Source of the DNA: Macrostomum lignano
Taxonomy: Eukaryota
Assembly (NCBI GenBank): GCA_002269645.1
Contig: NIVC01003341.1
Location: 1-64,000, forward strand
DNA: 64,000 nucleotides
Direction: 5' to 3'
Shown here: positions 33,701 to 58,265 of the stretch, piece by piece
Numbering within the stretch: position 1 is the first letter of the stretch
How the letters are laid out: each line of letters opens with the position of its first letter
Program-made: the position numbers and the translations under genes
Notes under the pieces: model-generated
What the model saw: only the letters and a program-made list of their open reading frames with translations
Database searches by the model: none
Told to the model about the DNA's origin: nothing

Positions 33701-36372
33701 GCCAGTCGCTCACCAGCTCAGCCTCTCGCCTGCTGCCATCCGCGGGTCGAACTGAGCAGCCCGGAGTCTGGGAGCCGCAGCTGCTCACTGAGAAGCCAAT
33801 GCGATCTCCGTTTTTCCACGTGAGGGGCTCGCAGTTCAGGCAGAATGGGTTTCTGGTCTCGTTCAGCTGCATTGGGGCCGTGCGGCCTGAGGATGCGGAG
33901 GTGAAATGAACTCAGCGACCTGCAAATCAAAGCATTGAGTTGAAAGACCTCACCTTGCAGATTGAGAGCGCTCCACTGGAGAGGCTGGGAGCTGCTGAAC
34001 AGAAGGAAGGCCACTGGAAGCTGGAAGGAGTGCTCAGAATGTCTGAGTTCTTCAGAATGTGCAAAATGTGCAGCATGCAAACAGCTGCCTCTTTCACTCA
34101 CCATGGCGGTGCCGCTGGAGCCATCAAGACTCCGCCAGCGGTCGCTACCGTTGAAGGCCTCCCAGCTGGCGCGGCACGGATTCTCCAGCTGCAGCTCCAG
34201 CGGGAGGCTCGAGGCTCCGACCGCTGACACGGGCGAGCCGACCGGAGCTGCTGCGAGCCACTGGCCATCTGCAACACGAGTGCTTGGCTGCCAGCTGGTC
34301 TCACACTGTCTCAGAGTGCTAATTAGATGCTAGCTGGTCTCACACTGTCTCAGAGTGCTAATTAGATGCTAGCTGGTCTCACACTGTCTCAGAGTGCTAA
34401 TTAGATGCTAGCTGGTCTCACACTGTCTCAGAGTGCTAATTAGATGCTAGCTGGTCTCACACTGTCTCAGAGTGCTAATTAGATGCTAGCTGGTCTCACA
34501 CTGTCTCAGAGTGCTGATTAGATGCTAGCTGGTCTCACACTGTCTCAGAGTGCTGATTAGATGCTAGCTGGTCTCACACTGTCTCAGAGTGCTAATTAGA
34601 TGCTAGCTGGTCTCACACTGTCTCAGAGTGCTTGGCTGCTAGCTGGTCTCACACTGTCTCAGAGTGCTAATTAGATGCTAGCTGGTCTCACACTGTCTCA
34701 GAGTGCTAATTAGATGCTAGCTGGTCTCACACTGTCTCAGAGTGCTAATTAGATGCTAGCTGGTCTCACACTGTCTCAGAGTGCTAATTAGATGCTAGCT
34801 GGTCTCACACTGTCTCAGAGTGCTAATTAGATGCTAGCTGGTCTCACACTGTCTCAGAGTGCTAATTAGATGCTAGCTGGTCTCACACTGTCTCAGAGTG
34901 CTAATTAGATGCTAGCTGGTCTCACACTGTCTCAGAGTGCTAATTAGATGCTAGCTGGTCTCACACTGTCTCAGAGTGCTAATTAGATGCTAGCTGGTCT
35001 CACACTGTCTCAGAGTGCTAATTAGATGCTAGCTGGTCTCACACTGTCTCAGAGTGCTAATTAGATGCTAGCTGGTCTCACACTGTCTCAGAGTGCTAAT
35101 TAGATGCTAGCTGGTCTCACACTGTCTCAGAGTGCTAATTAGATGCTAGCTGGTCTCACACTGTCTCAGAGTGCTAATTAGATGCTAGCTGGTCTCACAC
35201 TGTCTCAGAGTGCTAATTAGATGCTAGCTGGTCTCACACTGTCTCAGAGTGCTGATTAGATGCTAGCTGGTCTCACACTGTCTCAGAGTGCTGATTAGAT
35301 GCTAGCTGGTCTCACACTGTCTCAGAGTGCTAATTAGATGCTAGCTGGTCTCACACTGTCTCAGAGTGCTAATTAGATGCTAGCTGGTCTCACACTGTCT
35401 CAGAGTGCTAATTAGATGCTAGCTGGTCTCACACTGTCTCAGAGTGCTAATTAGATGCTAGCTGGTCTCACACTGTCTCAGAGTGCTGATTAGATGCTAG
35501 CTGGTCTCACACTGTCTCAGAGTGCTGATTAGATGCTAGCTGGTCTCACACTGTCTCAGAGTGCTAATTAGATGCTAGCTGGTCTCACACTGTCTCAGAG
35601 TGCTTGGCTGCTAGCTGGTCTCACACTGTCTCAGAGTGCTAATTAGATGCTAGCTGGTCTCACACTGTCTCAGAGTGCTAATTAGATGCTAGCTGGTCTC
35701 ACACTGTCTCAGAGTGCTAATTAGATGCTAGCTGGTCTCACACTGTCTCAGAGTGCTAATTAGATGCTAGCTGGTCTCACACTGTCTCAGAGTGCTAATT
35801 AGATGCTAGCTGGTCTCACACTGTCTCAGAGTGCTAATTAGATGCTAGCTGGTCTCACACTGTCTCAGAGTGCTAATTAGATGCTAGCTGGTCTCACACT
35901 GTCTCAGAGTGCTAATTAGATGCTAGCTGGTCTCACACTGTCTCACAATGTGTCCCAGACTCCCTCTGCCTCATCATGCATCATGAGAATGAGTCGGTCA
36001 ACGTCACTCACCCCAGTCTCGCACGCTCACCGCCTTCAGCATCATCGGCTGCCTCAGCTGCATCACAAGCCACCGAGGCCCGGACCGCACAGCAGCAGGG
36101 AATCGGTTTGTCTCTGACTGCCGACTCTCCCACCAACGGCAGTGCGCACCGCTGGGTTGCCAGGTGCGCAGAACGTCAGCCCTGCTCAGCTGCACTGTCA
36201 CTGGAAACGGATTGCTCACAGAATGTTTACAGGAAATCCTACTAGCATCTGAGACACTGATCTGATGATAATTTGTCTCACCTGTGCGATTAACATCAGA
36301 GCAGTCTAGGGAGCTGTCCGCCACTTGCAAATTCAGCATAAGCAGCAACAGGTTCCATAATTTTCTATTCAT
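27751..36372 (-). CDS. Receptor A: signal peptide, discoidin/F5-8C-like, 4 or more Ig-like domains, TM, ITIM-bearing tail (one region unresolved)
   Basis: In-phase exons 36372-36282, 36200-36012, 34268-34102, 34020-33954, 33886-33714, 33639-33504 (GC donor), 33412-33258, 33092-32912, 32517-32351, 32265-32121, 32049-31931; unresolved or disrupted ~31780-31345; then 31293-31103, 30147-29924 (TM AWIIIGVFLLSSALAVTVALVLI-RKRK, VQYANL) and probably 27999-27751. Confidence 0.78.
28708..29004 (-). mobile_element. RTE-like LINE 3' ORF remnant
   Basis: TLLYACERW...RRLRAFQMKTYRRMLVISWKEKKTN...EGGVEGRSGRGRP matches the post-RT C-terminus typical of RTE-clade elements. Confidence 0.75.
29017..29642 (+). 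repeat. 14-bp minisatellite (gggaaatctcggct)
   Basis: Direct reading; lies in the last intron of receptor A. Confidence 0.95.
30340..30636 (-). mobile_element. tRNA-derived SINE family 1
   Basis: A box tagcctagtgg, B box ggttcgattct, shared core, att-rich tail. Confidence 0.85.
30670..31018 (+). mobile_element. Decayed mariner transposase C-terminal remnant
   Basis: With stops and frameshifts: IHQEFVP, LLHRDNEPAH, LKQALKGSRSEDQEDLKNN, LRRCVECRGNYFEG, matching mariner motifs HHEFVP, LHHDNAPAH, RCI...GEYFEG. Confidence 0.8.
31498..31688 (+). repeat. 21-bp minisatellite (agtcaatcacctggattctct), ~9 units
   Basis: Direct reading; lies inside the fourth Ig-like unit of receptor A. Confidence 0.93.
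32535..32857 (+). repeat. 15-bp G-rich minisatellite (ggctgggtgaggggt)
   Basis: Direct reading; intron 8 of receptor A. Confidence 0.95.
34293..35945 (+). repeat. 39-bp satellite, ~42 units, intron 2 of receptor A
   Basis: Unit gctagctggtctcacactgtctcagagtgctaattagat; period 39 measured at 34321/34360. Confidence 0.97.
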
Positions 36373-56800: not shown

Positions 56801-58265
56801 AGTGCTAATTAGATGCTAGCTAGTCTCACACTGTCTCAGAGTGCTAATTAGATGCTAGCTGGTCTCACACTGTCTCAGAGTGCTAATTAGATGCTAGCTG
56901 GTCTCACACTGTCTCAGAGTGCTAATTAGATGCTAGCTGGTCTCACACTGTCTCAGAGTGCTAATTAGATGCTAGCTGGTCTCACACTGTCTCAGAGTGC
57001 TAATTAGATGCTAGCTGGTCTCACACTGTCTCAGAGTGCTAATTAGATGCTAGCTGGTCTCACACTGTCTCAGAGTGCTAATTAGATGCTAGCTGGTCTC
57101 ACACTGTCTCAGAGTGCTAATTAGATGCTAGCTGGTCTCACACTGTCTCAGAGTGCTAATTAGATGCTAGCTGGTCTCACACTGTCTCAGAGTGCTAATT
57201 AGATTCTAGCTGGTCTCACACTGTCTCAGAGTGCTAATTAGATGCTAGCTGGTCTCACACTGTCTCAGAGTGCTAATTAGATGCTAGCTGGTCTCACACT
57301 GTCTCAGAGTGCTAATTAGATGCTAGCTGGTCTCACACTGTCTCAGAGTGCTAATTAGATACTAGCTGGTCTCACACTGTCTCAGAGTGCTAATTAGATG
57401 CTAGCTGGTCTCACACTGTCTCAGAGTGCTAATTAGATGCTAGCTGGTCTCACACTGTCTCAGAGTGCTAATTAGATGCTAGCTGGTCTCACACTGTCTC
57501 AGAGTGCTAATTAGATGCTAGCTGGTCTCACACTGTCTCAGAGTGCTAATTAGATGCTAGCTGGTCTCACACTGTCTCAGAGTGCTAATTAGATGCTAGC
57601 TGGTCTCACACTGTCTCAGAGTGCTAATTAGATGCTAGCTGGTCTCACACTGTCTCAGAGTGCTAATTATATGCTAGCTGGTCTCACACTGTCTCAGAGT
57701 GCTAATTAGATGCTAGCTGGTCTCACACTGTCTCAGAGTGCTAATTAGATGCTAGCTGGTCTCACACTGTCTCAGAGTGCTAATTAGATGCTAGCTGGTC
57801 TCACACTGTCTCAGAGTGCTAATTAGATGCTAGCTGGTCTCACACTGTCTCAGAGTGCTAATTAGATGCTAGCTGGTCTCACACTGTCTCAGAGTGCTAA
57901 TTAGATGCTAGCTGGTCCCACACTGTCTCAGAGTGCTAATTAGATGCTAGCTGGTCTCACACTGTCTCAGAGTGCTATTTAGATGCTAGCTGGTCTCACA
58001 CTGTCTCACACTGTGTGTCCCAGACTCCCTCTGCCTCATCATGCATCATGAGAATGAGTCGGTCAGCGTCACTCACCCCAGTCTCGCACGCTCACCGCCT
58101 CCAGCATCATCGGCTGCCTCAGCTGCATCACAATCCACCGAGGCCCGGACCGCACAGCAGCAGGGAATCGGTTTGTCTCTGACTGCCGACTCTCCCACCA
58201 ACGGCAGTGCGCACCGCTGGGTTGCCAGGTGCGCAGAACGTCAGCCCTGCTCAGCTGCAGTGTGA
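50849..58265 (-). CDS. Receptor C: discoidin/F5-8C-like, 3 Ig-like domains, TM, short Tyr tail (first exon not located)
   Basis: In-phase exons 58265-58077, 56676-56522, 56434-56368, 56252-56077, 55559-55400, 55312-55152, 53895-53715, 52555-52389, 52191-52038, 51921-51770 (TM), 51001-50849 (SIYDYETV); ~571 aa. Several exon lengths (189, 67, 181, 167) equal those of A. Confidence 0.85.
51159..51462 (+). repeat. (GACA)n microsatellite
   Basis: Direct reading. Confidence 0.97.
52207..52380 (+). repeat. (GATA)n microsatellite
   Basis: Direct reading; fills most of the 52388-52192 intron of C. Confidence 0.97.
52628..53635 (+). repeat. ~20-bp minisatellite (ttattatctatggggtgtcm)
   Basis: Direct reading. 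Confidence 0.95.
54130..54378 (-). mobile_element. tRNA-derived SINE family 2
   Basis: Minus strand gggggccgtagcccagcgg (A box)...ggctcgattcc (B box); homologous inverted copy at 55817-56010. Sits between two parts of the 19-bp array. Confidence 0.7.
54378..55120 (+). repeat. 19-bp purine-rich minisatellite (gagagagcagagggcatgg); short outlier at ~53965-54018
   Basis: Direct reading. Confidence 0.95.
55817..56010 (+). mobile_element. tRNA-derived SINE family 2, diverged copy
   Basis: Shares gtgcagtcacat...ggcttggctctgc...aattaac...gagggccaaccccc...aaagttagggccgctgtacactcc with 54130-54378. Confidence 0.7.
56700..58010 (+). repeat. 39-bp satellite, ~33 units, intron 2 of receptor C
   Basis: Same unit as in A and B. 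Confidence 0.97.

Follow-up and report, generated by a model that had tools for sequence, protein, structure and literature searches.

Hybrid genes formed by non-allelic homologous recombination (NAHR) between tandem paralogs are known from haemoglobin Lepore, the red/green opsins and CYP11B1/B2. The human minisatellites MS32 and CEB1 are recombination and conversion hot spots whose activity is allelic, polar and confined to a single locus. Immunoglobulin switch regions are intronic tandem repeats located upstream of exchangeable bodies, and the joining of two of them deletes the interval. In the vertebrate receptor families KIR, MHC class I and Ly49, concerted evolution is restricted to particular exons. 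In the sea urchin Sp185/333 (SpTransformer) family, short tandem repeats have been proposed to promote duplication, deletion and gene conversion (PMC3091723, PMC5103432). Here we describe a locus of the flatworm Macrostomum lignano which can be compared with all of these systems. The stretch of DNA analysed (the window) is the first 64 kb of contig NIVC01003341.1 of the Mlig_3_7 assembly and carries three tandem genes, A, B and C, on the minus strand. The three genes share one segment almost unchanged, here called the cassette, which consists of exon 2, an intron 2 filled with a 39-bp minisatellite and the first part of exon 3. Our analysis makes it probable, with good confidence, that this one segment of an old, M. 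lignano-specific family of signal-peptide and transmembrane proteins has been homogenised by ectopic recombination, the rest of the genes having diverged to saturation.

The shared cassette and the bodies around it

Mlig_3_7 is a PacBio/Canu assembly with RNA-guided annotation (PMC5730564). Arrays in the window were called by TRF, and blocks shared between the genes were obtained by BLAST among the flanks of ±1.5 kb around the arrays. Two blocks match in these flanks, with E-values of 1e-60 to 1e-125, and nothing further. On the plus strand, the right blocks are 258 nt long and 97.7% identical (A 35946-36203, B 49106-49363, C 58014-58271) and the left blocks are 147-157 nt long and 94-96% identical (A 34132/34142-34288, B 48778-48924, C 56540-56696). 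Read on the minus strand, the 258-nt block opens with a CAG acceptor, continues with an exon of 189 nt and closes with 66 nt of the following intron. On this strand intron 2 runs for 66 nt from its GTGAGT donor to the 39-bp array and closes with 20 nt ending in TTGCAG. The parts of the cassette in the three genes are the following.

36012-36200, minus strand: gene A exon 2, cassette; 189 nt, phase 1-1, 97-98% identical to B and C
35946-36011, minus strand: gene A intron 2, 5' flank; 66 nt from donor to array, shared
34289-35945, minus strand: gene A intron 2 array; 39-bp unit, 42.6 units, 98% matches, b/d variant units and an internal higher-order duplication
34269-34288, minus strand: gene A intron 2, 3' flank; 20 nt ending in TTGCAG, shared
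34102-34268, minus strand: gene A exon 3; 167 nt, shared with B to ~34142 and with C to ~34132
49172-49360, minus strand: gene B exon 2, cassette; matches the annotated protein P0028
48925-49105, minus strand: gene B intron 2 array; 39-bp unit, 4.6 units, 100% matches
48747-48904, minus strand: gene B exon 3; 158 nt, shared to ~48778
58077-58265, minus strand: gene C exon 2, cassette; 189 nt
56697-58008, minus strand: gene C intron 2 array; 39-bp unit, 33.6 units, 99% matches, six private single-unit variants
56522-56676, minus strand: gene C exon 3; 155 nt, shared to ~56540

Exon 2 is 189 nt long in A, B and C, with canonical AG/GT sites and phase 1-1, and in all three copies the reading frame stays correct from exon 2 across the splice into exon 3. 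A and B differ at four sites of exon 2, all of them replacements (Q>K, R>C, K>E, W>G). A and C also differ at four, three of which change the amino acid while one lies in the codon split by intron 1, and B and C differ at six. In global alignments, which were judged against shuffled-sequence controls throughout, exon 2 reaches an identity of 0.97-0.98 and the whole of exon 3 one of 0.83-0.84. Exon 3 is near-identical through ...CRASW-EAF, and the DNA similarity is lost 18-40 nt before the own donor of each gene, the edge in B lying ~10 nt ahead of that in C. Three of the seven variable exon-2 sites fall within the first 9 nt, and differences are dense past CRASW. Because the differences crowd to both edges and the edges of B and C lie 10 nt apart, these borders are better understood as the ends of conversion tracts than as the ends of an insertion. 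The homogenised segment begins at the exon 2 acceptor, takes in the satellite-filled intron 2 and ends ~125-135 nt inside exon 3.

The same 39-bp consensus was returned by TRF for all three arrays of the window. Apart from private variants, the arrays consist almost purely of consensus units, and the array of A has the internal higher-order duplication listed above. The private variants and the differing lengths indicate that the arrays evolve independently and that the copies are distinct loci. The 39-bp unit contains 9 G and 9 C, and the array windows have GC skews of -0.002 and 0.000. Every unit also holds the palindromes CTAATTAG (with a TAATTA homeodomain-type core) and GCTAGC together with one GTGAG donor-like motif, and all six frames of the unit carry stop codons. 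Judging from these motifs, an intron whose array holds as many as 43 of these sites could exert a regulatory side effect.

On sequence grounds, A, B and C are real, colinear and old tandem paralogs. Exons 1-6 have canonical splice sites in each of them, and the signal-peptide exon is a separate one in each gene, its phase-1 donor lying 81-139 nt upstream of exon 2. The exon sizes from exon 2 onward are colinear in A/B/C (189/189/189, 167/158/155, 67/67/67 and 173/179/176 nt), as are the phases and the protein motifs. Outside the cassette, DNA identity in exons 1, 4, 5 and 6 and in introns 1, 3 and 4 is 0.45-0.57, which is the level of shuffled sequences (0.47-0.54). For intron 5, B and C are 0.52 identical, whereas the values of 0.14-0.18 obtained with A (shuffled 0.18) carry no meaning, as the intron measures 74 nt in A against 406 and 517 nt in B and C. 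Sensitive blastn among the bodies of A, B and C returned only copies of dispersed repeats and one weak 96-nt match in the exon-10 region (64.6%). Similarly, tblastx revealed only short colinear blocks with 29-53% amino-acid identity, reaching down to the membrane-proximal exons.

An initial annotation of this stretch had counted four exon-2 differences for A/B and four for A/C, with all the A/B ones being replacements, and these counts are exact. It had also described the intron flanks, the array and exon 3 as nearly identical, in agreement with the two BLAST blocks, and its estimates of about 42, 4-5 and 33 units are matched by TRF (42.6, 4.6 and 33.6). Its view that the signal exons and the exons it called Ig are alike only at the level of motifs is borne out by DNA identities at the shuffled level. 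It had further stated that the similarity stops abruptly at the exon 2 acceptor and in the middle of exon 3; the acceptor edge is indeed sharp, but the exon 3 edge is located near the 3' end of the exon and not in its middle.

Cassette copies on three contigs and a hybrid gene

The sample of cassettes comprised 11 copies on three contigs, covering 185 kb of sequence: the window (cassettes wA, wB and wC of genes A, B and C), L001 (the locus of protein P0010 on NIVC01001776.1) and L003 (the locus of protein P0021 on NIVC01000712.1). L001 is the homologue of the window in another subgenome copy, with 93-98% identity over unique segments, and has six cassettes; L003 has two. The cassette is present in all 11 family genes on these contigs. 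In 11 of 11 cases the array, of 1.9 to 42.8 units, lies inside intron 2 of the cassette, which, for these three contigs, agrees with the initial annotation, where a genome-wide check had been proposed of whether the 39-mer always sits in this intron.

The 11 cassettes contain 53 unique coding variants, of which 12 are synonymous (22.6%, against 24.7% expected under random mutation). The variants are distributed 22/16/15 over the codon positions, and their density is 0.18 per nt in the intron flank as compared to 0.17 in the coding part. Within the window, the proportion of non-synonymous differences (pN) equals or exceeds that of synonymous ones (pS). A synonymous share so near to random expectation excludes strong purifying selection as the cause of the identity. 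The earlier impression that all differences change amino acids is true for the four A/B sites, but it is a small-sample effect which disappears among 11 cassettes.

Pairwise distances between the cassettes are star-like, with 2-9 differences per 249 nt. Over 249 nt, the copy Mb, located on another contig, has 3, 4 and 2 differences from wA, wB and wC; between the orthologs wA and L6 there are 5, comparable to the ~2.2% single-nucleotide divergence among the three subgenome copies of the M. lignano genome (PMC10733133). Non-orthologous copies are as close as orthologs or closer, and the gene bodies in which they reside are of clearly different types. Some variants recur in patches over copies that are not orthologous: R>C is common to wB and L5, V>V to L4 and L5, and the K/E and V/L sites are further cases. 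As in concerted evolution, the identity of the tract is far above that of its flanks, silent and non-coding sites included, and the relationships of the tract conflict with those of the surrounding genes. Since the identity is equal at synonymous sites and in the intron flanks, the variants look neutral and non-orthologs are close, we conclude that the cassette has been homogenised and not preserved by selection.

Two other readings of the variants were considered and rejected. Positive selection on the cassette is not consistent with a synonymous fraction equal to random expectation. A different reading frame for exon 2 had come into view as six of the seven variable sites lie at codon position 1, but the bias is gone with 11 copies. 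On the gene strand, exon 2 has no second frame that is open over its full length, and among the frames on either strand which would make its variable sites third positions none is open across it.

Ten of the 11 copies are free of stop codons. The copy at L001 55674-55926 carries a 5-nt deletion in exon 2 that shifts the frame and is probably a pseudogene. In the copy L3 (L001 38071-38600) the array is degenerate, with ~3 variant units, and the first ~100 nt of exon 3 are lost; evidently, array instability can erode the exon. An alternative acceptor in this copy would preserve the frame (AVEDPCSASKDAF...).

The homologous contig provides a product of exchange between cassettes. L001 9666-10491 corresponds to window 58841-58014 (exon 1, intron 1 and exon 2 of C) with 98.3% identity. 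This part is followed by a 12.9-unit 39-bp array, after which L001 10988-12634 corresponds to window 48924-47299 (exon 3 of B onward) with 96% identity. Further downstream, L001 stays colinear with B and with the B-A intergenic region. The piece of the window missing between the two parts is given below.

49106-56696, minus strand: segment absent from NIVC01001776.1, comprising the body of C and exons 1-2 of B; 39-bp arrays on both sides

The hybrid is annotated as Mlig025426g1 (P0010), has the signal peptide of C and is 94% identical to B (P0028) from exon 2 on. As in hybrids generated by NAHR, the 5' part of the upstream paralog is joined to the 3' part of the downstream paralog, the interval is deleted and the junction falls in shared homology. 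From its arrangement, the gene is the product expected of an unequal exchange of the Lepore type between two cassettes. Array variant maps were tried for placing the C/B crossover and could not place it, because the arrays are near-pure consensus with private variants. P0013 and P0016, which have an identical body segment and different signal peptides, may represent a second swap. Taken together, the homogenised segment and the C/B hybrid on NIVC01001776.1 demonstrate recent homogenisation of this segment and exchange within the cassette, so that the core of the initial annotation, which had proposed recent gene conversion or cassette exchange, holds.

The annotated range of P0010 extends over 77 kb (L001 10001-87216). 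Its last exon matches with 100% identity at 87004-87213 and with 98.6% at a nearby copy at 17781-17990, and the model probably jumps between duplicated segments.

Protein family, gene models and other features of the window

Family searches, both word-indexed and with an exhaustive profile, returned 27 proteins, all from M. lignano; the databases searched yielded no relative from any other species. The cassette-coded segment is present in about 20 protein models that differ in signal peptide and body. In the family alignment the signal peptides differ, ~107 residues are near-identical in the members (...VRDW | DGQW...) and all bodies begin to diverge at one common point. P0024, which belongs to the same genome, contains the same region at only 34% amino-acid identity, which indicates that the cassette-coded sequence is not intrinsically invariant; no further homologues of P0024 were found. 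The cassette exons are really spliced, because the annotated RNA-based models P0028 and P0010 (annotation method: PMC5730564) carry the exon 2/exon 3 junction exactly. This speaks against an objection raised with the initial annotation, that the cassette might be a mobile element which is not spliced into mRNA. Older gene models break at intron 2, P0001-P0004 ending at exon 2 and P0015-P0027 beginning at exon 3.

The same annotation had called the cassette-coded region discoidin-like and the following part an immunoglobulin (Ig) stalk. Pfam searches at E<=10 gave nothing for spliced A, P0001 and P0007-P0009, nor did the single open reading frames (ORFs) of the window show a domain, and at E<=1 nothing was obtained for ten long members, including P0010, P0015, P0016, P0018 and P0021. 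The family profile, run against all PDB sequences, found no discoidin at E<=10 and nothing relevant, and the discoidin motif WLxVDL...QG was seen by eye as a near-miss only. In two AlphaFold2 runs the predicted local distance difference test score (pLDDT) was <50 for residues 1-140 (exons 2-4), where homogenisation leaves almost no sequence diversity, so the fold model is unusable there. The discoidin-like label is thus not sustained. Exons 5-6 of B (residues 141-243), in contrast to exons 2-4, are modelled as a beta sandwich with pLDDT 70-85. Its best PDB matches are Ig V domains, at the marginal level of E ~1e-3, target template-modelling scores of 0.5-0.6 and a root-mean-square deviation of 4-6 A. 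The Ig stalk therefore has weak fold-level support in exons 5-6 only, and no Ig match in Pfam. The membrane-proximal exons carry W-x-[VI]-x-C-x-[VA]-N-Q-S-G motifs, and the UniProt names 'Ig-like domain-containing' given to the family are automatic. A constant tip on a variable stalk is speculation, because nothing shows that the cassette is kept constant for a function.

With regard to the tails, an ORF at window 29753-30253 (minus strand) has a transmembrane segment followed by VQYANL, which resembles an immunoreceptor tyrosine-based inhibitory motif. The tail motif GHYESDGSTFV at window 27754-28041 (minus strand) is common with P0016, P0018 and P0021 (GHY[ED]LDG[SC]TFV). By these motifs, the family members look like signalling receptors.

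Gene B is annotated as Mlig025426g2 (P0028, PAA51874.1; 717 aa), and the model confirms the traced exons; the 31-kb PAA51874.1 locus matches window 28264-59621 with 100% identity, and its record gives these very coordinates. For genes A and C the public record has no annotation. The parts of the three genes outside the cassette were traced as follows.

36282-36372, minus strand: gene A exon 1; signal peptide MNRKLWNLLLLMLNLQVADSSLDCSDVNRT, not shared at the DNA level
34020-33954, 33886-33714 and 33639-33484, minus strand: gene A exons 4-6, guided by the M. lignano proteins P0005/P0007
49477-49558, minus strand: gene B exon 1; signal peptide MMTTGLGTILLLMAVWKAG..., unique, confirmed by the annotated protein P0028
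38267-48660, minus strand: rest of gene B, with exons 4-6 at 48660-48594, 48501-48323 and 47916-47781
43864-43718 and 38476-38267, minus strand: gene B transmembrane exon and last exon, from the annotated 717-aa model
58405-58504, minus strand: gene C exon 1; signal peptide MQLCQVLQPVLIILYLGIATQSFDLDCSIKKHK, which also heads the hybrid P0010 on the homologous contig
56434-56368, 56252-56077 and 55559-55400, minus strand: gene C exons 4-6

In gene A, exon 6 ends in phase 0 and exon 7 needs phase 1 (33484-33412, minus strand), the phase being 1 in B and C. UniRef models similar to A end at the exon 6/7 point, and the P0011 model splices exon 4 straight to an EPCQTAVV exon near 32533. It is possible that gene A is subject to exon skipping or damage at exon 6/7. 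A gene fragment (IKFHNYLHFNSRNHTVQSTNSSVSCGSLRAVNLTIDGEVLG..., with a transmembrane segment) is present in two copies at window ~700-1500 and ~11000-11700. In the UniRef model P0011, a sequence of this fragment's family precedes an A-like gene in a single fusion, probably because gene models were merged.

Repeats make up more than half of Mlig_3_7, and simple and tandem repeats account for 15% of the genome (PMC5730564). Other minisatellites, with units of 14, 16, 17, 21 and 41 bp, crowd the window (for example at 38600-40149, 41023-43645, 14371-15454 and 17804-22181), and two long ones, which have no counterpart in A or C, lie within introns of gene B. A long terminal repeat retrotransposon of the Ty3/gypsy type lies at window 23276-27243 (minus strand), with a 1060-aa gag-pol ORF at 24061-27243 and a 287-aa integrase ORF at 23276-24139, and is the reason for the GC-rich block at 24-26 kb. 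ORFs like those of long interspersed nuclear elements occupy window ~60400-62000 (plus strand), beginning with an apurinic-endonuclease-type part (...IRVATFNARTLSQ...) that is followed by a reverse-transcriptase-like part. A dispersed element of ~290 bp is present in four copies (22645-22946, 30346-30637, 37357-37659 and 44274-44603), with several more in L001. It has a tRNA-like head (GGGGTTGTAGCCTAGTGGT...GGTTCGATTCTC), in which ARAGORN found no intact tRNA, and is probably a tRNA-derived short interspersed element. Rfam and tRNA scans of the window gave no matches.

Origin of the homogenised segment and comparison with known systems

The minisatellite might be the initiating substrate of the homogenisation, as it offers the longest perfect homology that the paralogs have in common, up to 1.7 kb. 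Breaks in an array, or slipped replication, would be repaired from the array of another paralog, and the short homologous flanks would be co-converted during this repair. The diverged sequence beyond the flanks would then stop the extension of heteroduplex and leave the edges frozen. A driving role of the satellite is plausible; the lack of any relation between array length and identity in the 11 copies, and the unexplained sharpness of the 5' edge, make this causal step a weak one.

Several observations weigh against homogenisation by ectopic recombination, or against the part given to the array. In all copies the 5' edge coincides with the exon 2 acceptor to within a few nt, a sharper border than randomly placed tract ends would produce. 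There is no dose-response between array length and cassette identity among the 11 copies: L2, with 33.9 units, is the most divergent (14-20 differences), and Ma, with 1.9 units, is still 93-96% identical. Breakpoints are found outside the cassette too, for example in intron 5 of B and near exon 7 in L001, so the cassette is not the sole site of exchange. The hybrid junction is known from one PacBio-based assembly with three near-identical subgenome copies, and RNA support cannot separate the loci, the cassette exons being near-identical everywhere. No conversion event was directly observed, the process having been deduced from assembled sequences, and short-read polishing could have slightly over-homogenised the copies.

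Other explanations have to account for the same observations. Strong purifying selection on a peptide or on a nucleotide function (regulatory, small-RNA target or splicing), with no recombination between paralogs, would agree with a segment that is intact in 10 of 11 copies, and the CTAATTAG palindrome and the GTGAG motif of the unit make a regulatory or splicing role of the intron conceivable. However, the synonymous fraction is that of random mutation and the intron flank is as variable as the exons. This neutral-looking spectrum excludes protein-level constraint for ratios of non-synonymous to synonymous substitution (dN/dS) below ~0.5. In addition, P0024 shows that 66% replacement is tolerated in the domain, and constraint would not bring non-orthologs closer together than orthologs. 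To our knowledge, there is no precedent for nucleotide constraint over ~450 nt plus a hypervariable array which starts exactly at an acceptor and stops within an exon, and we regard constraint as very unlikely. An assembly artefact (collapse, chimeric joins between subgenomes, or polishing with multi-mapping reads) deserves attention in view of the ~85% of Mlig_3_7 which is present in three copies at ~2% divergence and for which the assembly has been called error-prone (PMC10733133), and the break of older gene models at intron 2 (P0001-P0004, P0015-P0027) points in the same direction. Yet each of the eleven cassettes has private substitutions, and array lengths, variant maps and unique flanks differ between them. 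Moreover, arrays of 0.1-1.7 kb should be short relative to PacBio reads, and neither the window nor L001 contains an N, which leaves an artefact highly improbable.

Independent insertion into each gene of a mobile cassette with an internal satellite, subsequently exonised or absent from mRNA, would explain star-like copies dispersed on at least three contigs and a similarity that ends abruptly on both sides. Against this, no terminal inverted repeats or target-site duplications were present at the edges when these were read, and all 11 copies occupy one in-frame position, with one phase, in homologous genes. Past the 3' edge the coding sequence, diverged but homologous, runs on in frame (RSLDGS / RPLTAA / MQISSS) into the conserved exon 4, P0024 holds a diverged version of the cassette region, and RNA-based annotated models splice exon 2 to exon 3. 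A transposable element with an internal satellite was rejected on the missing terminal and target-site repeats and on the in-frame homologous sequence beyond the edge, and the probability of a mobile cassette is close to negligible. Regulated recombination, with the intronic arrays acting as switch regions and frequent germline or somatic deletions re-pairing promoters and signal exons with different receptor bodies, would be in line with arrays of the same orientation upstream of each body in a tandem cluster, with one deletion-type product and with the possible second swap in P0013/P0016. But the two contigs differ by 2-7% in unique flanks, which makes the exchange evolutionary and not somatic. 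Furthermore, the unit has no G/C strand skew, unlike R-loop-forming switch regions, so that R-loop or switch-region chemistry is unlikely, and the swapped 5' part encodes a signal peptide only, so nothing is gained in binding diversity. We consider regulated switching extremely unlikely. We also give little credence to the satellite intron with its flanking exons being a dedicated recombination module, a hot spot that re-pairs promoter and signal exons with different ectodomain bodies while keeping the members addressable by a common sequence. If this were true, the re-pairing could recur in a neopolyploid germline or even be somatic, and would be a flatworm counterpart of switch-region or cassette rearrangement in receptors.

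Homogenisation by ectopic recombination makes the locus a clean natural case of homogenisation without selection, in which ~0.45 kb and a minisatellite are 96-99% identical in at least 11 otherwise saturated genes and one exchange product has been caught between subgenome copies. In M. lignano (transgenic, inbred, neopolyploid, with three subgenome copies), the rates of ectopic conversion, the limits of its tracts and the role of the minisatellite are directly measurable. There is also a practical side, as the cassette breaks gene models, and many UniProt entries stop with exon 2 or set in only with exon 3.

Compared with the systems described so far, the locus is a known process, concerted evolution with hybrid-gene formation, in an unusually sharp form, and not a new kind of system. 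Like Sp185/333, it is a tandem cluster of a lineage-specific, fast-diversifying family in which blocks of high similarity have sharp borders. However, in Sp185/333 microsatellites bound the blocks and whole genes with their flanks are similar, whereas here a 39-bp minisatellite is situated in an intron at the centre of the block and only ~0.45 kb per gene is similar. The L001 gene resembles Lepore-type hybrids in joining the 5' part of the upstream C to the 3' part of the downstream B with loss of the interval and a junction in shared homology. In classic NAHR hybrids the paralogs are similar over their full length, whereas the homology available here is limited to the short cassette and its array. 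With MS32 and CEB1 the locus has in common a hypervariable minisatellite, rapid internal turnover and conversion of adjacent DNA, but the exchange here would be ectopic among many paralogs and is deduced from sequence. The intronic arrays upstream of bodies and the loss of the interval on joining are reminiscent of switch regions, from which the locus differs in having no G-rich strand bias, no known deaminase and an exchanged 5' part consisting of a signal peptide only. Finally, as in KIR, MHC class I and Ly49, conversion has made some exons and introns uniform and left others to diverge; here, the contrast is extreme (98% against the level of shuffled sequences), and the homogenised part carries no sign of selection.

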